In this document: positions 468-41,667 of the stretch, in pieces
Layout of the letters: each line of letters starts with the position of its first letter
Position numbering within the stretch: position 1 is the first letter of the stretch
Source of the DNA: Guillardia theta CCMP2712
Lineage: Eukaryota; Protista; Cryptophyta
Reading direction: 5' to 3'
Assembly (NCBI RefSeq): GCF_000315625.1
Contig: NW_005434663.1
Span: 649,882 to 713,881 of the forward strand
Length of the DNA: 64,000 nucleotides
Notes under the pieces: generated by a model
What the model was told of the DNA's origin: nothing
What the model saw: the letters and a program-made list of their open reading frames with translations, nothing else
Databases searched by the model: none
Translations under genes and position numbers: made by a program

Positions 468-3400
468 ATGAGACGCGGTGCTGTCAAGCTGCTCGCCCTG
501 CAGTTTGCCCTTCTGTCATGTCGGATCTGTGCAGCCATCCTCATGCCAGGCACTCAACTGATTCTTGCCTACGATCCGTCGATTGCGAACCTGTCAACCA
601 ACATCAACTTGCTGTTTCAAGTTCAAACTGCGGGCCCTGCGACGAAGCTGCAGGGTTTTCTGATGAATTTCTCGGACTCCTCGACCTCTGTGAGCAGAGA
701 CCTGCATTTCACGGAGGCTTGGAGCTCTCGGAATGCGGCGCCAGCGGGCAACGACACGCTCGCTTCAGTGGACCGCGTCTCCTGGAACAAGCTGACGTAC
801 GCAATTGAGATTTCTTTCAAGAGGGAGCTTCCTAGTGGGTTCTGGGTGGACATCACCATCTCTTCCTCCAACGGGATCCGCCTCCCCGAGCGAGGGCTGT
901 TGCAACAGGACTCGAGACTGGTGAACGAAGAAGTGCTTTCCTCTTCCTCGTGCTCGTAACCTTCTTGTGTCAGACGTTCAGCGGCGCCACGTGCATTTCC
1001 CCCGCCGTAGGAAGTTTTCTTGATATCGCCAACCCGACAGAGCTCCGGTAGGGAAGGGAAGGAGGGATGGAGTATCTATGGGAGAGGAAGGAGGGAAGAA
1101 GGAGATGAGGACGAGGAAAAATCGGGCAGGGGAGGAAGAAAAGTTCGACTGCGATGTGTGTCAAGGTATGACGGCATTCTGTTGCCTGCAGGGTGTCTGG
1201 AGATAAACTTGGGCAAATCATCTTCCGTCCTCATTTCCGTATTTTCCCTCAAGACAAGGTTCAGGATTGAGATGGTCTCAATCCTGAAACGAGACTAACA
1301 CCTCTTCTTCTTTCCTTCCCCTTCCCCTTCCCAACCTCCTCCTCTTTCTCCTCCTTCCAGGTCATCATCGACTTGCCGGATTTCTACACAACATCGGAGA
1401 CAAGCGTAGTCACCATAGGGGGCACCACGGAGAGTTGGAGTCTGAGCAAGAGGACACTGACAATACAGTTCAGCTCTACACAGGAGAAGGACGTGCTGCA
1501 GTCCATCTCCGTATGGCCGACCATCTCCATTCCTGTCAACGGGCTGCTATCATCGTCTACTGCCTTGACAATCTCCTGCGATTGTGCGGAAGGACCGGTA
1601 TGAGAACGAGGAGAACGAGGAGGAGGAGGAGGAGGAGGAGGAAGAAGAGTGCAAGGTGGAGGAGGAGTGGAGGGGGAGGACGAGGGGGACGAGGAGGACT
1701 GCAAGGAGGAGGAAGAGGAGGAGTGGAAACCCATCAGGGAACGAACACTTGTGCGAGCCAGCGGGTGATGAGAGATCGGAAATGGAAGAGGAGGAAGTAG
1801 CGTAGAGCTTATGCGCTTGCCCAGGTCACTCCTACCCCCTTCGTGAAGATCCCCGATGTTGTCGGATACATCGCACAGTCAAGCTTGAAGCTCAGCAAGA
1901 GCTCCTGCTTGTTCGACGGTTTCAGGTAGGGCATGTGCGAGAGAGCAGACGAGGGAGTGGGAGGGAGGAAGAGGATGAAGTGGGAGGGATGTAGAAGTGT
2001 TCGAAGAAGTTCAAGAGCTGGAAGCAACTAAGGTAGAGCCTGAAGGGAAAGGCAGACGGTGGGGGGGGAGGAGGGAAATGTTGGGAACAGAAGAGATGAA
2101 ACGAGGACGAGCGTAGCCCTGAGATGCTGCGGATCAGGTGGCAGTGCGAGTGGAAAGCTCCGAGGGTCGACGAGGCAAGCGAGCTCGTCTTTGCGTTCAA
2201 GTTCTCCTCTTGGAGCTTCCTCAAGGGCGACCCGCTGCGGGTCAAGCTGGAAGGGTTCGGAGGGGAGAGGAGGGAGGGCTTCCCAGTCTCCCAGACGCCC
2301 ATTCTTGCCGAGTTGAGCCCTCCCTCTACCCTCGCTCGCCATCCCTACGGCTGCCCCTCCAACGCGGGCTGTGCCAGCATGCAGTACGCAGGAGACTCGC
2401 TCTTCTCCTCTGCCTCCTGGGACCCGCAGGCCTCTCTGCTGGTGTTCACAGCCTCCAAGGACGTCCCTGCTCAGACCAGCATCGTGCTGGTCGTCTCCTC
2501 CTCGGCTGGGCTGCGGGTCCCAACGGTCGGGCTGTGGAGCAAGTCACCGGTGTCCATCCCCCTTGACTTCCCGCTGAACCTCTCGACCTCTGTGCTGCAG
2601 AACCTCTACCCTGTGATGGCGTACAGGACTGTGTCCCTGTCCTTCTCTCCTCTCCTCCCGAACAGGAGGGTCGAGCTGGTCTTCAGGATGCAGCCATGGG
2701 TGCAGATGCAGGCGGGAGAGAACATCACGCTCCTTCTCCCTGGCTTCGTTGCCCAGCAGAACGCGAGCTGCCGAGGAGGACGGGAGTTCTTGGCGAGTTT
2801 CAACTCCACTAGCAGCGGGCAGCTGCTAGTCTTGTTCACGCTCCTGCAAGGCGTGCTTCCCCTGGGGGAGAGGAACGTCAGCTGTTCCGGCCTCCTCTCC
2901 CCTCCCCTCGGGACGTCGGGCCTCGTCGCCATGAGCTCCTTCCTCCCCTTGAGCAGGAGGCCGTCGGAGCAGAGGGCAGACCTGCAGTTCATCCTCCCTC
3001 CCCTCCTCAACGTCAGCCTGACCTTCAGCAACGACACCAGCTCTGACGCAGTCGCTCTGCTCCTCTCCTTCAACCTCTCCATCCCCCTCGTCGCCGGCGA
3101 CCGCATCGAGCTCCTCCTTCCGGGCTTCAAGTCACAGCGCACATCCTCCGTCTCCACGGACACCGGGAGGGTGCAGTACGACGGCTCCTCCCAGACCCTC
3201 TCAGTTACGCTGACGGTGGACCTGCCGGAAGGAGGACCCAGGAGTCTCCTCGTCCCCCAGAGCGCGAATATGTTCCTGCCCCTCCGCGGCCTCGAGCAGA
3301 ACGATCCTTCTCTGCGCTGGAGGGTGAGCATGAGCAAGCAGGAGCAGGAGTGGCTTCCCTTGTACTACTCTCAGAGGATCACGCAGAGGCTGGACAACAG

Positions 3401-27776: not shown

Positions 27777-30700
27777 ATGGATGTGTGCAAGTTGCTTATG
27801 CTAGACATTGAGGCAGCCGTCAGCGAGCTTTGTCATGATGATTCCGGATACACGATTGGATCCCTCGGAATCGCATTGGATGGATGTACGATCGTTGGAA
27901 TCATAGAAGACGGTCCAGCATTCCAGAGCGAGAAACTGAACCTGGGAGACAAGATCGTAAAAGTGGACGAGGTTCTTGTCACAGAGAGTTCGATCATATC
28001 CGCCATAGCAGGAGGCGAAGAGGAGCAGGTCGTGATCGAGGTTCAAAAGTCTACTGGGAGGAACGTCAAGGTGTGATGGGGGCCGGCATGAAGGGATGGA
28101 AGTGAAGTTGGCATGTGCAGGTGGAGTTAACGCGGGTGAAATCCCTTGACTTGATAGCCCTCCATGAGCTCTCTAGTCAAGTCAATCTAGCCGTTCACAC
28201 ATGTGAGAGAGGAGGAAGATGTGAACCTGCACGTGACGCCAGCTGGTGCAGGTGAACACCTGCAAGAGGAGCCGGAAAGCAGCAACGGGAGAAGAGTCTC
28301 GGACCTGATGGGCATTCTCGGGAATCTGACGGAACTTTTGAAGCGCTCCTACCACAAGGTGAGAGGATGACGACGTGTTCCTATATGCCATGACGCTCGT
28401 AAAGAGACAAAAAGCTAGCTCGAGTTATCTCTATCGTTTGCGACGGTCTCAAGAACGAATGTACGTCATGTTATGTTATGACGGCAACTGACGTATACAA
28501 TGATATGCGTGCAGGTCTTTGAATATCAAAGATCTGCAATTGCAAATGGAGAACATGAACACGTCGAATGAAAGTCAGATGCAAGATGCTATGGACGCCA
28601 GAGATAAGATCAAGCAAGAGTGCATTGATCTGATCAACCAGCTGCAGGTATGGTAGCGCACCTCTCGCTCCATGGCGTGCTGACAAACGGCATTTGCAGA
28701 TCTCTGAATCTGTGCTGAAAGGACTTGAATCTCAACTCAACAATGCTATGGTGATGCGATCGACCATGATTTGATGGATGCTCTTGACGTGTTCCAAAAG
28801 ATATCAATAGAAGAGAGACAGAGACGCCTCGATGAAGCGACGGAGCGGGAGAATTCTCTCAAACGAGAGATTCAAGAGCTTCAAGTGATGTACAAGCAGG
28901 TATTCCCTCTTCACAAGATGTCTTGAGAACATGATGGTGATGATCCAATGCAGGTTGTCGCAGGCCCGTCATCCATGGACAACGTTAGCCCAAATTTGCA
29001 TTGTCAGAAAGACATTGAATCCTTATGAAAACAGGAGGTGCAGCAATTAAAAGCAGAAATCAAAGAGAAGGAGGAAATAATCCAGGGAATGAAAAAGGAC
29101 TTCAGGTATTCTGAGTTTAATCAAGTTCTTGTGGATGTAATTGCGAGTACAGATCAAACTCTTCTCCTACAACTCATGATGGCATTCAAGGATTCAAGCA
29201 ACAACCCATTCACTTCCATCAACCAAACACACCGACACAGAATTCAAGTCACATCAATAAGGTCTTTTGGGATCAGCTGGCGATCCATGTGGATTTGACA
29301 GGAGTTTGGACAGGATGGAACTTGTTGGTGTAAGAACATCACGCCGGAATACGTGCAACATCTGGAGGTAAACCACAGTACCCGCATACTTTGGTGACGG
29401 CTGGTTGGCAGCTTTCAACAAGCACTTTGGAGAAAGCAGTCGAAACCTTGAAGTTTGAGACTGTCCATATGTCGCACGACTACAACAGATGCAAAAGGAA
29501 ATGCAACTCTCTGTTGACTGAGAGAAGCCTGATCCTCAAGGAAGGCGAGGAATGGAAGACCAAGGTAAATCCCAAGACGTGTGTGAACGTTAAAATGTGA
29601 TGAGTTTGCAGAACTCCAGCTTGCAGTCTGAACTTCGGAGATTGAGTTCAATGTCTCGATGATAAGATCGTGCTAATCGGTTTTGACTTGCTGCCAGCAG
29701 ACTTGAATCTCAGAGGGATCTTTTGGAACTCTCGTAACTTCATCTGATCACCGCAATCAAGCCATATGATTCACGCATGAACAGGTCACAAGAGATGAAT
29801 AACATACGTCAGCACATGCATGGAAGAGAAGAGAGCAAGGTAGAGATTATGTTTCAACTCAATTGTTTGATTGCTGTGTTCAGGCCGAAATCATGCACTT
29901 GAATACCACGAGACCTACAGCGAGAGCATCCGCATCTTCACCTTCGCTTGACACTTCTCTCAATCCTACTTCGAAGCGAACAGAGTTGTCCTTCATGGGT
30001 AGACGTTCCTGGCTCCTGTATGCTTGCAAGCCCTGATGTCCACACAGATCACCAGACGAGATCAAACTCAACAGAAACCAAAACTAACGCATGGTCCGCG
30101 AGTCTAAAAGAGCATACTCAGAGAAGCCCTCAGGCACTCCCTCGCTCAACCTGCTGCCTTGTGACTGATCCTTCCAGATCTCTCCCAACCCTCCTCCTGT
30201 TCAATATCTTGCCGGTTCGGGAGATTCTGCGGGAGAGCTGGTCTTTTCCAGCAGCACTGTGACTGTCTCTGTGTTTGCACTCTCAAGTTGATTGTGATGC
30301 AGTCTACCATTTCCTCTCAAACCTCAAAAGTTCCTTCACCCAGCAATCAGCGCGTGCAGACTGTCAAGACCTACTCCTCCATCCCGCATGTTCCACCCTC
30401 ACAACCGTCGGGCTACAACTCCTGGCACGGTGAGTTGAGGGTGGCAAGGTGAGTTCTCTCATGACGGAGATTGCAGCATCGCCATCCCCGTCGTTACATT
30501 CGTCTAATGACGGACGGAACTCGATTCAATCGTCTCCTGGCCCCTTGCATCGATCGTATGACAGGGGCGGGCAAGGCTCGCAGCAGGTTTACGCTAGGAA
30601 CGTTCAAGGTAGACTTTCACTGTCAAGGTTGGAAGAGTCACGCAGACGCTGCAGTGCTGGCAACCAACAACTTTCAAGTCGCCTACCCGCTCGGAGCACC

Positions 30701-30967
30701 GATGGTATGCGAGTTGTTGTGAGCGAGAGAAGATTGACCGGCATCAGGTGCACTATCAGCAACAATATGTGTCTGTGCCAGTCCAGGTCCCATATCAACA
30801 GCAACGTTCTATGCGAGTATCGGCAAGAGACAAGGTGCTGGAGAAGAGGGCTTGCGATCTCCTTCAGATCTCTCACGTCAATGCAGACAACGATGTGGCT
30901 GAGGGTGATGAACTCCGGGTATGTGGAATGATGACATGTGAGGTCATAGTATGGTCTTGTGCGCTGA
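27777..30967 (+). CDS. PDZ-domain plus long coiled-coil protein with a low-complexity tail (many exons; 3' end uncertain)
   Basis: PDZ: SLGIALDGCTIVGIIEDGPAFQSEKLNLGDKIVKVDEV. Heptad-rich exons follow (QQLKAEIKEKEEIIQGMKK; LEKAVETLKFE). Confidence 0.75.
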
Positions 30968-30968
30968 A

Positions 30969-31061
30969 GCTAAATTTCCTTCTTAAAGATATATTTCCTT
31001 GTCAAAGATATTTTTCTTTCTCAAGCTATATTTCCTTCTCAAAGATATAGTTTTCCTTGTC
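30969..31061. repeat. Imperfect ~18-19 bp tandem repeat x5 overlapping the stop codon of the NACHT gene
   Basis: Minus-strand units similar to GAAGGAAATATATCTTTGA. Confidence 0.75.
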
Positions 31062-34000
31062 CTGAACGCGCAAGATGATCACCTTCCCCTCCTGTTTGCA
31101 GTTGGATATCAGTTGAATCTTCTTCATAATGATCTGTTACCTTGGTTCCTAAAACGACTTTCCGTCCATCTGTCGGACAAATCGACCAGCTTGATATTTG
31201 ATAGTTCGGATGAAACGACGCAACCGTCTGACTTTGACGTGTTTCACGCACGATTCTATCGACCGCGTGCTCTTACCTGGCATCAAGATCGACTGCGTCA
31301 TCCTTCCGAAGCTGCCCAGAGCGTCAGGGTTTCAAAACGCCCGAGAGCTTCATGGCAACCTTGACTGAGTTGTCCTCCACAGTCACGAAGAGCCTTTGAC
31401 CGTCTGAAAGATTGATCCTCGGGACCTGATCTTCGATGAATGACACCTTGAGACGCACTTGTCCCAGGTCGTGTCCCTGTAAGAACCACTCTCAGATGCA
31501 TCCAGCACATCACTGCCTTACCACTGCATCGTTCTCGTCACACAGATCGAACCATCTGTCTATCTCCTGCTCATGTTTCAGGTCATTACATTGGGAATCA
31601 TATACAAACGGGCTGCTCCGCCAGTTGAAGGTGAGTTATCTCCAATTGGCCGAGGAAATCGTGATCTCCGACCAAATCATGGTCGAACACCTTAACTTGA
31701 ACATGCGGTGGACTTCTCAGTCCATAAAACGTAAACTTTTCGTTCCAAACCTGAGAGAGTTATTCCCCATCACTTTTCCCGATTGTGTTTCAAGAAACAG
31801 AGAAGATGCTTACAGGATTCAAAGTTTTCGGTCTGACTGACGTCTTCACCTCCAGAACCTCGTCATATCTCGACGTTCTTGAAATCTTTTGCGCTTCTGA
31901 AATCAAGATTTGAATTTTCTGCAAGAAGCATCTTAATTGTAGCAACACATGCTTGATCCTCACGTCAGGATAATCCGACTGCATCTCAGTAAAACGCCTT
32001 CTGGGGAGGGCCAGCAGGCTTGTGGCTCCTTCAGCTACAGCTGAGGCTTTGCTGGGCTGCCGCAGCATCAAGGCGATCTCTCCGATCACGTCGCCCTCCT
32101 CCAGCAAAGCGATCTCTTCCCCGTACGCGTTGAGGTTGGACTCCTGCTCGTCGATGCTCGTACCAACATGCATGTGCAGCTTTAGACTCCCAGACAAGAT
32201 CTGGTGGTCTGTGAGCAACACGACAAGACGGAGGTGACATGTACCATGTACATGGAGCTGTAGTACTCTCCCTGGAGGAACAAATGTTGACGATCGGACA
32301 ACTCGACTATATCCGACTTTGAAACCACATACTCGAGCTGTTCGTCAAACAACTCGAACAGCTTCGCTTTCTTCTTGCGCATGAGCGCCAGTGCCTTGGA
32401 GTACAACGGATGGTCTGCTGACCTGAGATCCTGGAAACTTTGACCAGGTAGGCTACGAAAGAAGGTCAGGCTGGATCACGAGCGAGCGGCTGCCTGACCT
32501 CTCGAGCTCATCGGACTGGTTGGTGAGGTTGATGACGACGAACGGGTCTGAAGTTCCCGACGCGTCCGCGGCCAACAGCTGACGTGCCTGCAGCACTTCT
32601 ATAACCTGCAAGCAGATCAGTAGCAGTTCCTCGAGTAGCGACTGCCACCAGAGTTCTCGGCATCATTGCGCTCCTGCTGTCAGGTCGTCTGTTCTGGATC
32701 TGCTCTTTTCTCTCGACCTTTCTCAGCACTTTGCTGGCCAGCAACCGCACTCGTGGCGAGCTGCTGGAAGCGAGCTGAATGAGCGTCTGAACCACCTACA
32801 AGTCGAGATGGAATCACGAGTACTGCGAGGTGCTGAAGATTGTGAAGGCGACAAGGGTGAGAGTTCGTACCAGTCTCGACGACTTTGTGAGTCTAGAGAG
32901 GACCATCAAAGTTTGACATACTAGAGTCTCATCGTCGCGCTCAAGGAGGGGAAGTAGCACCTGAATAGCCTGCAGATCAAAGAAGACAACCAGTGAGATA
33001 CGAGCTATCATGGTTCAATTCATGTCCCTCTCACCAAAATGTTGATTGACGGGATTCCAAGCATTCCCAGAGCAAGGTGTTTTCTCAGAAGCTTTTGTTT
33101 ACCTATCATGGATAGCAGGCTCCGTTCCATCTGGAAGAATTCGCTCGCAGGATCTTCAGTGCTCTGCAACGCATCTAGAAGGAACAAGGACAAGGGAACC
33201 GATTCATGTGTGACCTAGAAAGAGAACATCCTTCATGTCATTCATACAGACATGCTCAGAAACATCAAGTCAGCTACCTCTCCGTTGTCTGATTGCGACG
33301 TGTCTCCTTCCAGTGCTCCATGATTCGACGTCGCATCTGCCGTGACGTCATCGGGAGTCTTGTTTTCATCATCGTCGAGTGTTCTCTTGCTCTCTGAGGT
33401 CGTCGACTGCTCTGCATTCGCGTCACTCTCAGCATCCTCAGCTCTTGGCTGCTCGAGCTCGCGCAGCAGCATGGTATACTGCCACAAGCCAGCAGCCTCC
33501 TTCCTCAACCCTTCCGATGCTTGGTTGCCCTCAACAGCATGCCCCTGAACTTCAGCAATATCGCCTTGGGACAGCATGTCTGTGAGCTGAGAAACTGAAG
33601 TTTCTTCGGTTGCTTCATCTTCTGCTTCATCTTCTGCTTCATCTTCTGCTTCATCTTCTGCTTCATCTTCTGCTTCATCCTCGGCTACTTCACTTGTTTC
33701 CTCGATGGTATCAGGACCTTTGCGTTGCTCATTGTCTATCTCGGAGTTGATGGCTAACTCCAACTGCTCGTCAGACAGGGCCATGTCGTCGGCATGTTGA
33801 GCTAGGAGGGCGAGGAAGGGCGAGGGATCAGCCTCCTCGTGCACCTCCCAGTCCATCACCTCGGGGAAGATCACATCTGAGATGGAAGCGACGTCAGCAA
33901 TCCGCCCGACGAGTCGACAAGAGGAGGCCTCCCATATCAGGCATCCGAACTTGTGCAACGTAGCGATGTATCCCCCGTCCTGCGAGAACTTGCAAGCAGC

Positions 34001-37000
34001 TGCTGGGTCGCTCGCGTCGCACAGGTGGTGAACTATCAGCGTCTCTGCGTTCCAGTCGAGCACTCGGACATGTACACCCCCGTCCGCGGCTTGCGAGATC
34101 AAGTTGGTCCCGTCGCGCGAGATTTCAACATGAACAACTTCCATTGAGTGGCTGGTGGTCGTTTGCAGGGCGATGCCATGGGCGATGGAGGGGTCGTAGA
34201 GTAGCACGCTTCCTTGCGCTGTCGACACTGAGATCAATCTTCTTGTTGTACAGAAGGTGATGCCGCAGATGGTCGAATCGACTTTCCCGAGATTCAGCGC
34301 CATGTCTTGCGAGTTGAGGTCGAGGTGGAACAGGGTGCCGTCGACAGATCCCATCGCCAGAGTTTCTCCTTGAGCATCAAACTCACAGCAAACGATCGCA
34401 GAGTCATGGAACGCGATCGTCTCTGACTCCACGTACTGATGCATGTCCCAAAGTTTGATGGTGTTGTCACTGGAGCAGGAGACGAGCAATTGTTGACTGG
34501 CAGAGTAAGCAAGGTCGTAGATGATACCTTGATGCTCCTCGAGTTGATGTCTCTGTTCGCCAGACTTGGCAGACCACACCCGAACAGTCTTATCGTAAGA
34601 CCCTGAAACCACCTCGTCCCTTTGCTCCACCAGCACGCAAGCCGTCACCGCAGACTGATGGCCTAGGAAGGTGAGCTCGACTTGCCCTGTGACGATGTTC
34701 CACCTCCGCATGCTGCTGTCCCCCGACGCCGTGATGACTCGATCCTGATGGTAGAAGACTCCGTCCAGCACTTCCCCCTCATGCCCTTCCAGCCTGACGT
34801 CCAGCGCTCCTGACCCTGTGTTCCACACGCAGGCGGTGAGGTCAGCAGAGGTCGTGAGGATCCTCGAGTTGTCCTTGGAGAAGCAGCAGTGCAGTATCGC
34901 CTCCCCGTGGCACTCGATCTCCCGCGCTACCCTCCCGGTCTTGTAGTCGTGCAGTCTGATCAGCCCGTCCGCCCCGCCCATCATGACCAGGTCGTCTCCC
35001 AACGAGTAGGTCACACTGAACACGCCGGAATGGTGGTCGAGTAGAACCCTCAGCAAGGGGTCGACGTTCTCGGTCTTGTTTGCGATCTCAAACCAGACGT
35101 CAGGCACGATGCAATGATCCTTGGCTGTCGGCTCGAGGATGTTGAGAGCGTCTTTCACAAGGCCATTGTCGCCATTTGCAGTGCTATTCACCGCACTTTG
35201 AAAGGTCTGCAAGGGTTCGATTTGCAAAAGAGATTTGTTCTTGAGAACGAATTCAAAATACATCGCAATGCAAGTATTCCTCGGATACAAGATGCTCCCA
35301 ATCATAAGATCGTCGCAAAATTGATTGATCAGGCCAGCAATGCAGGCCGCATGAATGAATGGAATGGTACATACCTCTCGCTCAAACCTCGTTTCCCCCA
35401 TGTCTGCTTTCTTGACGTGTTCATTCGATTTCGCGTACTTGGTTGCTCTTTCAACTGGATCTACCCCTGACCCTTCGAAGCCACCCAGGGCATAGATGTG
35501 ATAAGGCAGCTCGCGCAGCTTCCTGACGTTCACCATGAATCGCTCGCCCACTCGCTGAAAGATGATGGGTTGCGCGTCTTCGACTTTCATGCTCCCCTCG
35601 TGATCCTCTTGTATGGTCGGATGATTTGATTCATCACTTGCTGCTTGTCCGCTGAAGTAGAGGTACTCGATCTCATGAAAGAAGTTCCTCGTCTCGAGAC
35701 TTGTCAAGTTGTATCGCCTGACGACAAACTCAGTAGCCAAGGAGTTGTTGGTCTTGATGCAGGTGTAATTCTCAACCCAGAAGTCTCTCAGGAAGGGTCC
35801 AAGATCTCTGTGCTTCATGTCAGTGTGTGAAGGCAACTCTATCGACATCACCTCTGAAGCAGAAACGTCTGCATGGCGGGGAGGGACTGGACCTCTGGGC
35901 TGAAGCTCCCAAAGAATTCCTCCATGGACTCGCTACAGAGAGACAAGATGTCAGCGAGCTCAGCCCTTGTGAGACCATCTCTAGCAAAGAGGATCGCAGA
36001 GAGAAAGTCAGTGACCAGCCTCTTCCCCCTCTTCTCTTCTACTCTCTCGATCATGTAGTTGTACATCCCATCGAACGAGGTTGGGAGCTTCAATTGAGTG
36101 TCAAAGGAGCGCCATGCAGAAGAAGCTTCAATGCACAGCGAGACGAAGAGGGGGAAGCAGGAGAGCGCTTTCTGCCCGACACTCTCGAAGCTTTGGACGG
36201 CATTCTTGATCGCTTCGTAGTGATCAGGATGAACGTTTCTGTGCTGAACTTCCAGGTGGCGAGAAATCAAAGTCGAGGCATCAGATGATTTCAAAGGCTC
36301 GATCCTCATGAACACTTCTCCGGAATACAAGTCGCTCAGGGCATCCAGACACTCCTTGGACGTGCTCCTGACCGTCACCACCACGCTGCTGTGCTGCGGC
36401 AGCGTCTTGGGCAACCAGGAGAGAGCCTCGGTGAAACCGAGGTAGCTCTCGAGCTCCTCAAGGGCATCGACCAAGACGGCTATCGGCTCCTCGGCAGACG
36501 CGTATTGTAAGAGCTTCAAGAACAGATCCCTCTGCTTCAAGACGTCGCCGGTCAGCCCCGCTAGAGTGTTGTCTTGCATGTAACCTGTGACTGAGCACAG
36601 CTGACGACAGAGGCCATGCAGCAGCTCTGAGGGGTTGAGGCGATGCAAGGAGGAACCAAGGAACCTGTAGATCACGCACGAGCCCTGGACCTGCTGCTTG
36701 AAACGAGAGCCTACCTGACTCAGCAGAGAGGTTTTGCCGACTCCAGGTTGTCCAATCACAAAGAGCGGTTGATTCTTCAGCCCCCACTTGCGCTGGTTTT
36801 CTCCTTTCATGTACTCCAGCAGCGTTTTGAGCTCCTTGGTCCTGCACTCAAAGCCAAGACAATGTTTGACTGCCATCTCCAATTCAACGGAGATGTCTTT
36901 GTAGCGAAGCTCGTTATCTTCAGTTCTCCTTACATCATGAGCGATTCTCTCATGCGTTATCGAAGCAATATCCTCTGCGAACAAGGAGAAGTGCTGATCT

Positions 37001-40000
37001 TCGTCTATCCCGATCTCATGCGGCTTTCGTTTCTTCCACCTGTAGGCGACAACTGCGGGCGACAGCTCCCAGCTCTGCCGGTCTTGTGAAGTCAGCATGG
37101 CAGTGGGGGTGCGCACACGGAGAATGTCCATGCGCTCTTTGACAGAAGGGAAGACGCCTTTCAGCCGCCTCAGCAGCTCCGGTTGGGACATGAAGTAGTC
37201 CCTACAGGCCTCATGAGAGAGCGCAGCGAAGATTCCGAAGGAGCTGAAGGTTGTGACGGTGAAGGTCTTGGGGGTCTGAAACAGAAACGATTGTTCCCCC
37301 ACAGCATCCCCTGCCTTGAGGAACCCGGTGTTTTCATGGCCAGCGCCTGCCTGATGCAACAGGATCTGAAAGTCTCCTCGCAAGACGATGATCATGCAAT
37401 GCTGACCATCTTGCTCGTTGGCGATAATGTCTCCTCTCTTTGACCTCCTGATCCTGCAGCACGAGACCAGGAATTCCAGCTCTTCAGGGGAAAGCATCTT
37501 GAATAGGCTCGACTTCCGTTTGAAGATTGCTCTCCGCAAGCGGAATCGATGAACCTTCTCCTCCATCCCCTTTGTCGCATCACTTGCAGTTTCCTTCGCC
37601 AGCAGACTTTTCAGCAAGGACTTGTCCATCTCAAGGAGCGAACATCGCCTAGTCGCGGTCACGTTGTAGGCTCGTTCCTCATACGGCTGATAGACAGTCA
37701 GCCCGAGCAGTTCGCCTACCCTTTGACTTCTTTCAACCTCCAGCTGCTTGTCTGATTCATCCGAGTCGATCGTGATGCTGATTTCGCCGTCAATCAGCAT
37801 GTAGACGCAGTCTCCGAAAGGTCCCCAGCCCCTGACGTCACTTTGAGACTCCTTCCATACCTCGCAAGATTCCTCCACCGTCACGAGCCATGCTTGCCGC
37901 AGGACCTTGTCAAACGCCTCAGCTCCGAGAGCAGCTGGGTTGAGTTGACTGGCTTCCAGGGCTGAGAACCAAGAGGCTTCGCTGATCTCACTCACTGTAA
38001 GCTTTCTTCGCTTGCAAACGGACTGGAAGGAAACCAGCTCTCTCTTGATCTCCCCACTCCTCCCTAACAACTCGCCGGAATCCTGGCAGTTCACTTGAAA
38101 GAGCATCGCGTCTGAAACCAAATCGACTTGATACTGCAGGTTGGCTTCTCCGAACAAATGCATCTCCCCAAAAGCAGACCCTTCCTCTATCAGGAAAGCT
38201 TGCTGATTGCCTTGAGAGTCGAGGTATGTCACTTTACACTTGCCAGATAGCAAGACGAAGAACGATCTTTCGATCTCAGATTGCAGAGGCAAAATTGAGA
38301 GCTCAGACTCTCGGATACTCGCCTCTATTGACGATTTTTCTATGATATTCTGCACATTGTTCAACCTTCGCTGTAAATTTTCAATTTTCATCAGAGCATC
38401 ATTGAGTAGCTTTGATGTTTCCTCCAAATCAGTCGAGGCTCTATCTAGAATTCGCACTGAATCGGAGGATCCTATTTGAACCTTCTTCTTTGATCCGAGT
38501 TGACAGATTTGATAGAGCTCTGCAAGGCTCATGATCCTCAAGATCGTACTCCGACGAAACTTTAATGTTTGCATGACCCCGGCAACATCCTCATCTGCAG
38601 CCTCTAGTTTCTCTTCCAGTTGCAACAAATCCTCATCGTTCACGTTGCTCTTGTTCGACAAATGATGGAATATCATTGCTTTCAGCTCTGACATGCTATA
38701 CGGCAAATCTCTATTTACCTTCTGGTACACTTCCAAATACTCAGCTAAGCTGCTCTTTCCTAGCGAGATTGCATTGGATTCATCGTGATCCCACAGAAGA
38801 GCAAAACATTTTGATTTTGCTTCCTCCTCTCCCCTTGACAACAAACCTTCGAACGCTTCTACAAACTCCAATGTCTCCGTGAAATATTTACAATGCTGAA
38901 TGTCACCAACCTGACTGCCCGCCCTTGACTTCTTGGCATCAAGGAGGAGTCCTTCAATCATCAGAAGAAACTCCTCAAAGTCAATGGTCCCACTCCCATC
39001 TTCATCGAAGTCTTTCAGGAACTCACTGATCTCATTCTGCCCCAGATGAATTCCAAGCTGCTCGAAGGCAATGATCAGCTCTTCGCTGTCTATCAAACCT
39101 GAATTGTCTGAATCTATCTCATTGAACAATGCTTTCACCCTTCGTTTCATGCTCGAACTATCCAAGACTCCGAGCTTCCCTAGAATAGCATCTCTCATGA
39201 TTTGTTTCTGCTTCCCAATGACCTGCTGCACACAAGCGTCATGAAACCCATCCTGCATCAGGTCGAAAGCCTTGGTCCACGCCTCATTCCCTTTGTCCCG
39301 CAACTGTGAAGATTTGCTTCTTCGGGAAGATCGATTCGAAGGGTCGACGAGGACGTAACAGCTGGGATCACTGTTTGTGTCCAGTCGAAACCATTCCAGC
39401 ATTGCCTTTCTTCTCTTGACATTTTGTCCATGATCTCCCATTGTGAGAAGGATTGATTCGAAGTGCTGCTGATCTATCTTTCTGGGAAAGGCTTTTCCAT
39501 TTGAAGAGCTTCCCAGCAAGCAGATGTAGTCCATGCTGCAAGAGGCATCCTGGCAAAACAGTCGGAGATCAGAGCAATCCTCATGAAGCTCAAGGTTGAA
39601 CTGATAGTTGTGAGATGGCGGCAACAGATGCAGAGGATCAAAGATCTCTAACTCAAACCCCCACGATCGCGCTAGGGTTCTCAGCCCACGTTTCAGATGG
39701 CCGCAGATGAAGTTTCGTTCTTCCTCGTGCTCTTCCAAGGAAGAGCTGACGTATATGCAGATGACATGCTGCTTGACTTGTCTGCGGTACTGAAAGTCTC
39801 CTTTGAGAATAGGGTTAACATGATTTACAAGACGATTCGCATTCTCTTCCTCCTCTTGTGAGATCGCCTGATCGAAGTCAGCTTTTAACTCTTCAGGGTT
39901 AGAGTTTGACTCGGATGCCAAAGACACGAGCTCGTCTCCCACCATTGCAATCTGCTCGTCAATGTATCGAATCCAGTGCTCGTTCCCAGATGCATAGACT

Positions 40001-41667
40001 AACGCCTTTGTTTTCTGAAAATCTTCCTTCGCACGAAGGAAGTGAAAAGAAGCTTTTGAAAGTCTTCCTTGCTGTATCTTTTCTAACGCATCATTGAACA
40101 AAAGAGAAGCCTCTTCCAATTTCATCAGCATCTGTTTCAGAGATGAGACTTCCTGGCATTTTCCAATCTCCGCACAATTTTCATACATCGTAAGACATTG
40201 ATCTGCTGCAGAGAGCAGAGCAGCAACGCTAGTTTGCAATATTTGTATATCTTTCGAATGCACTCTAGCGTATATTGTCTGCAGTTGACTATTCGCATTT
40301 CGGAGAATTACCTCTTTTCTCTGCATGGCAGTCTTTTTGCTCTGCAAGACATTTTGCGTCAAGTTCAAGTCAGATATTATGCTTGCCAATTGCGTTGCAT
40401 CATTGTAATGATCGATGGACTGAGCCACCCTTTCTGAGTCCAACATTCTCTGACCCGACTGCATCACGTCATCTAACCTTGCCACCTTATGCAACCTCAA
40501 AGTTGTTGACACCGTGAACAACAACCTCTCGATTCTCTCCGCCATTGTCTGTTCCCCGAGGCCGCTGATATTCCCTTTGATTGAGCGCAACATGTCAACG
40601 CACTCTTGGATGGATACCGCAGGCAACTCCTTGCACAGCTCAACAATGGCAGCAAGAGCCTTCAAGTACAGCAAGATGGCTTCTAGTCTGCTCAGACTCT
40701 GACTCTGAGTTGTTGCTTCCACTCCAGCTTCAGCAGCAGCCATCGGAGCAGGTACACGATGACTCATTCTGAAGTAAGAGAGTACCTTTACATGTGATCC
40801 GTTCGGACAATCTGAAAACAGGATTGCAACAACTCCAGGGAATTTGATATTTGTGATTTGAAAGGGAATTCTTCGGCTCTGCTTGTAAAAGTACAGGGAT
40901 CCTGCGTTCTCCTCATAGTCGAACTCGAGGCCGAGGGTATCGCCAGTGTCCAGCCTCCAGGAAGAAGCGTCGATAGACATGAGAACAGTCTCGCCGTTGC
41001 AGAGGTCTCCATCACTCGAGAGAAAGAAGGCCCTGTCATTGAAGTCTTCTTCAAACCAGTAGTCCCCTACCTTGACCGATTCCCCGTCCACCACCCCAAA
41101 GAAGAATTCTACCTTGCTGTCCAGGACGAAGTTTCCTACCTGAATCTCGCAGTATACTCGTCCCTCCTCGAGTGGCTTCCCCAGAAAGATGCTACGAACA
41201 GCTGCTGCTTCAGCGCACTGAATCAAGTTCTCCTTCACCGACAGCGATACGTGCTTCGTCTGCTGTGACCAGGGTTGGAGGTTGGCGGGGGCAGGAGCGA
41301 TGGGTGCGCTGCTTCCCCGATACTCCTGCAGGAACAGTTGGACGGAAGAGCTGACCAGTTGAAGCTGTGCGAGGAGAGAGTCAGAATCTATCCCGTGCAG
41401 AGACTTGTCGAACTCTCCTTGAACTCGATCTAAAACCTTGATCGCCTCTGCTTCTTTTGATCCGATCGCTGACTGAAGCTCTGCAGCTTCTTCTTTCAGC
41501 TTCTGCAGCTCCCTCCTCCTGCTCTCTTCCTCCGCGTCTCTCGGCATCTTCTCCTCAGCTTCATCTAGCAGTACCAGCGTCTTGCCGACTTCGCCATCAC
41601 TCAGCAGACCCTTCGCCTTTTGTATGGCCTGATCCCAAGCCTTTCGCTTCGATTGACCGCCCCCCAT
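31026..41667 (-). CDS. Giant NWD/TEP1-like STAND NTPase: SPRY, DUF4062/NWD-N-like, EF-hands, cNMP-binding x4, NACHT, WD40, ARM, C2
   Basis: Walker A GQPGVGKTS and Walker B IAVLVDALEE. EF loops DSDNSGLIDSEE and DEDGSGTIDFEE. GH...WN/WD repeats. ORFs 35848-41667 and 33242-35851 are joined by a 44-nt GT-AG intron (35808-35851). The 3' exons encode ARM, C2, cNMP and a final WD blade ending ...GTKEGKVIILRVQDKENYIFEKEI*. Confidence 0.85.
33611..33682 (-). repeat. Coding 12-bp tandem repeat encoding (EDEA)6
   Basis: TGCTTCATCTTC units on the + strand. Confidence 0.9.

Follow-up and report, generated by a model that had tools for sequence, protein, structure and literature searches.

The gene and its domains

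The window (the whole 64,000-nt stretch of Guillardia theta CCMP2712 DNA analyzed here) contains, on its minus strand, a very large gene, with its ATG at 41667 and its stop codon at 31026-31028, whose predicted product has a total of about 3,307 residues. Two large open frames, of 1,939 and 869 codons, are assigned to this one gene through a 44-nt GT-AG intron (35808-35851, minus strand) that joins its two large exons and that was deduced from the collinear alignment of P0003, a protein fragment of Hanusia phi. Large exon 1 (35852..41667, minus strand) codes for an MGGGQSK N-terminus, an EF-hand pair, three cNMP-binding (CNB) domains, a NACHT NTPase and an NWD1-type winged helix, and large exon 2 (33278..35807, minus strand) for a WD40 region, made up of a closed 7-blade propeller (AlphaFold2) and two further blades, followed by an acidic repeat linker. 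All these domains were identified with Pfam in the two open frames, NACHT with 47.6 bits, the winged helix (HTH_NWD1) with 28 bits against a cut-off of 27, and the WD40 families with up to 177 bits. Downstream of these, three helical, HEAT-like exons (33035-33214, 32871-32969 and 32649-32795, minus strand) lie directly upstream of a C2 domain; they are delimited by the junctions of transcript contigs, and their HEAT match is weak (E 0.016). From the N- to the C-terminus, the domain order would thus be EF-hands, three CNB domains, NACHT, WD40, HEAT-like helices, a C2 domain that holds a fourth CNB fold (the nested module) and a short tail. NACHT, NWD1-type winged helix and WD40 propeller follow one another in the order of the NWD1-like STAND NTPases, and, to judge from its sequence, the protein belongs to this group and is probably N-myristoylated.

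With Gly2 and Ser6, the MGGGQSK peptide (41647-41667) agrees with the consensus for N-myristoylation, and the Hanusia phi orthologue (P0001) starts in the same way; once N-myristoylated, it would give the protein a second membrane anchor beside the C2 domain. The linker after the WD40 region contains a perfect 12-nt tandem repeat (5.8 copies, 33611-33679), which codes for an EDEA acidic repeat. Another tandem repeat, of 19 nt (30974-31049, 4.1 copies, 81% matches), covers the end of the coding sequence with its stop codon and extends into the 3' UTR, and at this repeat the BLAST blocks of a metagenomic relative (contig L002, see below) overlap by about 42 nt, suggesting that its copy number differs there. 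A convergent gene is present on the plus strand at 30700-31000, where spliced contigs give a GT..AG intron at about 30833-30884, and its transcript extends to at least 31000, about 26 nt from the stop codon of the gene described here, so that the 3' ends of both genes probably overlap.

Exon structure and expression of the nested module

The initial annotation had proposed, from peptides read after removal of short introns, that a cNMP-fold domain interrupts the C2 domain, and had suggested RNA junctions as a way of checking it. The quoted peptides were all reproduced, at their places on the minus strand, by three-frame translation, and the exon borders were set at GT-AG sites. The module is encoded by a series of short minus-strand exons (A to J) whose introns measure 43-63 nt and are all of the GT-AG type. 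Exon A (32499..32605) encodes the N-terminal part of the C2 (its first strand, the Ca2+ loop 1 with two Asp, and the second strand) and ends in phase 2. It is followed by exon B (32245..32452), which contains a linker, a basic helical N-terminal segment and the first strands of the inserted cNMP-fold domain, and by exon C (31964..32200), which completes the cNMP beta-barrel with its C-terminal half, including the phosphate-binding cassette, and adds the B helix. Exon D (31814..31918) encodes the C helix of the insert and, within a few residues, enters the next C2 strand (KTSVRPKTLNP). The C2 continues with further strands and the Ca2+ loop 3 (three Asp) in exon E (31610..31750), with the strand that carries WFDL in exon F (31522..31566, placed by translation and contig junctions), and with its last strand in exon G (31360..31476), after which comes a first weak WD-like unit. 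The C-terminal tail is encoded by exons H (31277-31311), I (31141-31231) and J (31026-31091, stop codon 31026-31028), all three defined by contig junctions, and a second weak WD-like unit sits in this tail.

Pfam scans of the separate exons, judged against the curated gathering cut-offs, assigned exon A to positions 5-33 of the C2 profile (PF00168; 24.5 bits, cut-off 22), exon E to positions 49-90 of the same profile (32.0 bits) and exon C to positions 34-86 of the cNMP_binding profile (PF00027; 38.5 bits, cut-off 27.5). The matches of exons A and E are therefore complementary, non-overlapping stretches of a single profile, and the KTSVRPKTLNP stretch at the end of exon D was judged by eye to supply the missing positions 34-48. 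Neither exon B nor exon D matched a Pfam profile when scanned singly, although exon B has the length and the hydrophobic pattern expected for the N-terminal half of a CNB barrel. The complementary coordinates of exons A and E speak for one profile rather than for two overlapping, degenerate copies.

Transcript contigs were aligned to 30700-33480, and every modelled junction, including those of all the exons of the module, was found as an exact GT-AG junction in spliced contigs of three independent studies (runs X1, X2 and X6), so that the proposed splicing is borne out by RNA. The 45-nt intron 31919-31963 is spliced out in these contigs, though it could also be read in frame; the 63-nt intron between exons D and E is removed as well, and the weak-looking donor at 31359, after exon G, is confirmed. 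A single contig of 1,927 nt (run X2) connects the exons of the module with the terminal part of the large WD40/acidic exon (upstream of 33278), which places the nested module in the same transcript as the WD40 region. Since exon A ends in phase 2 and exon B alone restores the phase, any transcript without exon B would be frameshifted. Isoforms that skip exon C alone or exon D alone, which would remain in frame, were absent from all the contigs, where rare or minor isoforms could escape detection. A raw RNA run (X17) contributed two reads only. The nested module is expressed.

Conservation and search for relatives

An exhaustive protein search retrieved P0123, a fragment translated from unspliced genomic DNA, which led to two metagenome contigs of ENA project PRJEB17505, L002 (1-3598) and L003 (1-2738), with 91-93% DNA identity to 30340-34349. 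They point to a sister strain or species of the alga in environmental samples. The 13 C-terminal exons are all in frame in this relative, whose sole exonic indel is an in-frame insertion of 6 nt in exon C; the GT-AG sites are conserved, and the five Asp of the C2 and the entire phosphate-binding cassette are unchanged. Exon divergence is lowest in exon B (1.4%) and among the lowest in exon D (2.9%), whereas introns diverge by up to 20%; the inserted cNMP exons B and C are the most conserved and exon F is the most diverged. Over the 13 exons, about 31 synonymous and about 29 non-synonymous codon changes were counted. This pattern fits purifying selection on the arrangement, as seen in the sequence of a very close relative (93% DNA identity).

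The Hanusia phi orthologue is represented by two fragments, P0001 and P0003 (66% and 74% identity), which end just before the C2; P0003 stops at the first HEAT-like exon and is conserved there. No other orthologue was found. Searches for homologous proteins recovered only the Hanusia phi fragments and unspliced genomic ORF fragments (P0123 and P0273), and no database protein with the spliced module. The genome of the alga (87.1 Mb, 669 contigs) has no paralogue of exons B or C, exon B being single-copy. When the read-through of exons C and D was used as query against 1.84 billion representative proteins, 605 CNB relatives were recovered; C2 signature motifs were not found in the best 150 of the 605, and, according to Pfam, the five best contain several CNB domains each and no C2. 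A metagenome scan gave a single, unrelated match (41% identity), and the ESM Atlas gave generic CNB clusters only. A literature search for split or nested C2 domains, or for a CNB inserted in a C2, brought up no report of a C2 that holds a folded insert. In the sequence searches, which used single exons and would miss distant examples, the nested architecture was not found a second time.

The split C2 domain

The alignment of exon A to the C2A domains of synaptotagmin-7 and synaptotagmin-1 starts with the strand that precedes Ca2+ loop 1 and extends through the whole of the strand after this loop, and that of exon E, to synaptotagmin-1 C2A and ferlin C2 domains, spans Ca2+ loop 3. The five Asp that had been read as Ca2+ ligands do coincide, residue for residue, with the ligands of synaptotagmin-1/-7 C2A, two of them in loop 1 and three in loop 3 (spaced i, i+2, i+8). 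By alignment, then, this C2 has the five acidic ligands in loops 1 and 3 that define the Ca2+-dependent subclass, and both of its halves match the Pfam C2 profile, as in the synaptotagmin and ferlin domains.

In the well-established structure of synaptotagmin C2A, the strand 3-4 connection sits at the far end of the sandwich from the Ca2+ loops. Along the synaptotagmin chain 2r83_A, exon A reaches position 48 and exon E sets in at position 68, which puts the break in this connection. The alignment thus places the insert in the bottom loop of the C2 (strands 3-4, synaptotagmin numbering), opposite the Ca2+ loops. Unlike in synaptotagmin, a globular domain of about 180 residues separates strands 3 and 4, a single strand precedes Ca2+ loop 1, and there is an extra C-terminal strand (exon G) after WFDL; these last two features suggest a type II topology. 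From the same alignments, the two pieces are expected to pair into one beta-sandwich. A complex prediction in which exons A, D, E and G were given as separate chains scored 0.19 (mark 0.34), a value that counts neither for nor against pairing.

Taken together, the Pfam matches, the spliced transcripts and the conservation in the relative agree with the original proposal of a cNMP-fold domain inside a single C2. On this evidence, the nesting is a real feature of the protein, is expressed and has been kept in a sister lineage; it is an unusual variant of known domains.

The inserted cNMP-binding fold

Between the two C2 pieces, the insert of about 180 residues has a short linker of acidic character and a basic, helical segment; a beta-barrel follows, encoded by the end of exon B and by exon C, and then come two helices, from the end of exon C and the start of exon D. 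Among solved structures, the closest sequences are the B domains of protein kinase A (PKA) regulatory subunits, with which it shares the C-terminal half of the beta-barrel, the B and C helices that follow it and, within the phosphate-binding cassette, the initial Gly-Glu-Ile-Ala-Leu (with its Gly-Glu) as well as the Pro and the Ala-Ser. In contrast to the PKA regulatory subunit, in which CNB domains stand in tandem, the guest is embedded in a loop of another domain, and the alignment shows Ser, followed by Lys, at the place of the canonical Arg that contacts the cyclic phosphate; the lack of the Arg had already been noted in the first reading of the cassette. This Arg is absent from four of the four CNB domains of the protein (37141-38262 and 31964-32200), among which the guest comes closest to a canonical cassette. 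Binding of a cyclic nucleotide by the guest, of whatever kind, is accordingly best regarded as a tentative proposal, somewhat less probable than its absence to judge from these residues.

The loss of the Arg from all four domains would be expected if the CNB fold served only as a structural or protein-docking module, comparable to the CNB-homology domains of KCNH channels, and the C2 as an ordinary Ca2+-dependent membrane anchor. The strong conservation of the insert, which extends outside the cassette, is also consistent with such a ligand-free pseudo-receptor, whereas the guest cassette being the most canonical of the four argues against it; as the whole explanation of the module, this reading is possible, if rather doubtful.

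The last guest helix enters the next C2 strand within a few residues. This continuity would be the only structural hint of a possible coupling between guest and host.

The WD40 region and the C-terminal tail

Residues 255-700 of the WD40 frame were modelled with AlphaFold2 from an alignment of 63 sequences, giving a mean pLDDT of 79.7. Residues 9-302 of the model superpose on 7-blade propellers (Z 42, rmsd 1.6-1.8 Å), which indicates that WD repeats 1-7 close a propeller without outside help, while two further blades (repeats 8-9; model residues 318-398, window 33890-34140) have no partner in the model. Between the WD40 region and the C2 there are about 330 residues of acidic repeat and HEAT-like helices. 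The claim that the C2 is itself inside the WD40 region was not upheld, since the propeller closes alone with seven blades and this long segment intervenes. The related suggestion that WD-like strands complete the protein stayed weak: aligned with the protein's own WD repeats (hhalign), the tail exons fall in WD register, but the E-values, 0.012 for exon G and 0.14 for the second unit, are weak, and Pfam finds no WD40 in exons G-J. In linear sequence, then, the C2 lies between WD-like elements, and its insertion into a WD40 domain would be hypothetical.

A third level of nesting would require a second, incomplete WD40 propeller, formed by repeats 8-9 before and exons G-J after, into which the acidic linker, the HEAT-like helices and the C2 with its guest had been inserted. 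The two blades left unpartnered once AlphaFold2 has closed repeats 1-7, and the WD register of the C-terminal exons, speak for such a propeller; however, with only four or five blades it would be small for a WD propeller, and the matches in the tail are those just described, so that this arrangement is considered unlikely.

A proposed regulatory or docking module on a putative membrane anchor

The reading favored here, with moderate confidence and from sequence evidence, is that one C2 chain (residues ~2925-3240) is interrupted by a complete CNB fold of about 180 residues that would act as a regulatory lever or as a docking module. In this model, the C2 sandwich would dock on membranes through its top loops upon Ca2+ binding, and the CNB domain would hang from the opposite, bottom loop, between C2 strands 3 and 4. 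Its C helix would run almost directly into a core strand of the C2, a near continuity that makes a regulatory lever or a docking module the most likely role of the insert, which would thereby act on the membrane anchor of the STAND machine.

The initial annotation had raised the possibility that the insertion couples nucleotide binding to Ca2+ and phospholipid binding. In its strongest form, the guest would bind cAMP or cGMP and directly gate the binding of Ca2+ and phospholipid by the C2, the protein being recruited only when both messengers are present. In favor of such a coincidence detector, the five Asp are all present, the cassette keeps its Gly-Glu, Pro and Ala-Ser, has a Lys adjoining the missing Arg and is identical in the relative, the C helix is contiguous with a C2 strand, and the same protein has EF-hands and three more CNB domains. 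Nevertheless, Ser replaces the Arg that contacts the cyclic phosphate, this Arg is lost from every CNB domain of the protein, and the guest is inserted at the end of the sandwich opposite the Ca2+ loops. Given this bottom-loop position and the cassette without Arg, a direct coupling of cNMP binding to Ca2+/lipid binding is not favored by the sequence, and the coincidence detector is regarded as improbable.

An allosteric coupling through the C helix is possible. A full natural switch of this kind, in which a hinge or lid helix of the CNB domain, continuous with a core C2 strand, would be moved by the ligand and would alter Ca2+-dependent membrane binding, so that assembly of a NACHT-WD40 signalosome at membranes would need both Ca2+ and a cyclic nucleotide, appears more doubtful still; if true, it would be a natural counterpart of engineered domain-insertion switches. 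That the C2 pieces are decayed remnants, or that the gene model or the isoform is an artefact, as the two reads of the raw RNA run might be taken to suggest, is hardly credible in view of the same junctions in three independent transcript assemblies, of the frame, splice sites and ligand residues conserved in the relative, and of Pfam scores that exceed curated cut-offs.

Relation to known systems and significance

C2 and CNB domains are among the most studied second-messenger modules and normally stand side by side. Domains split by another one are known in the PH family, where PLC-gamma, syntrophin and ROCK have split PH domains. The PH1N-PH2-PH1C tandem of myosin X (PMC3216653) resembles the module described here in that a membrane-binding beta-sandwich is broken in a loop by another folded signalling domain, around which the host would be expected to reassemble. 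In contrast to the myosin X tandem, the host here is a C2 and the guest a CNB fold. With the NWD1-like STAND NTPases the protein shares the NACHT domain, the NWD1-type winged helix and the WD40 propeller(s), and it differs from them on either side of these domains: the NACHT is preceded by EF-hands and three CNB domains, and the WD40 region is followed by HEAT-like helices and the nested module.

An expressed and conserved, folded CNB in a loop of a C2 would lend itself naturally to testing whether the insertion of one domain into another couples them allosterically, and it would give a route to study how a protist NLR-like STAND machine is recruited to membranes. If the insert were inert, the locus would still show neatly that a C2 sandwich can accommodate a guest of 180 residues in its bottom loop.
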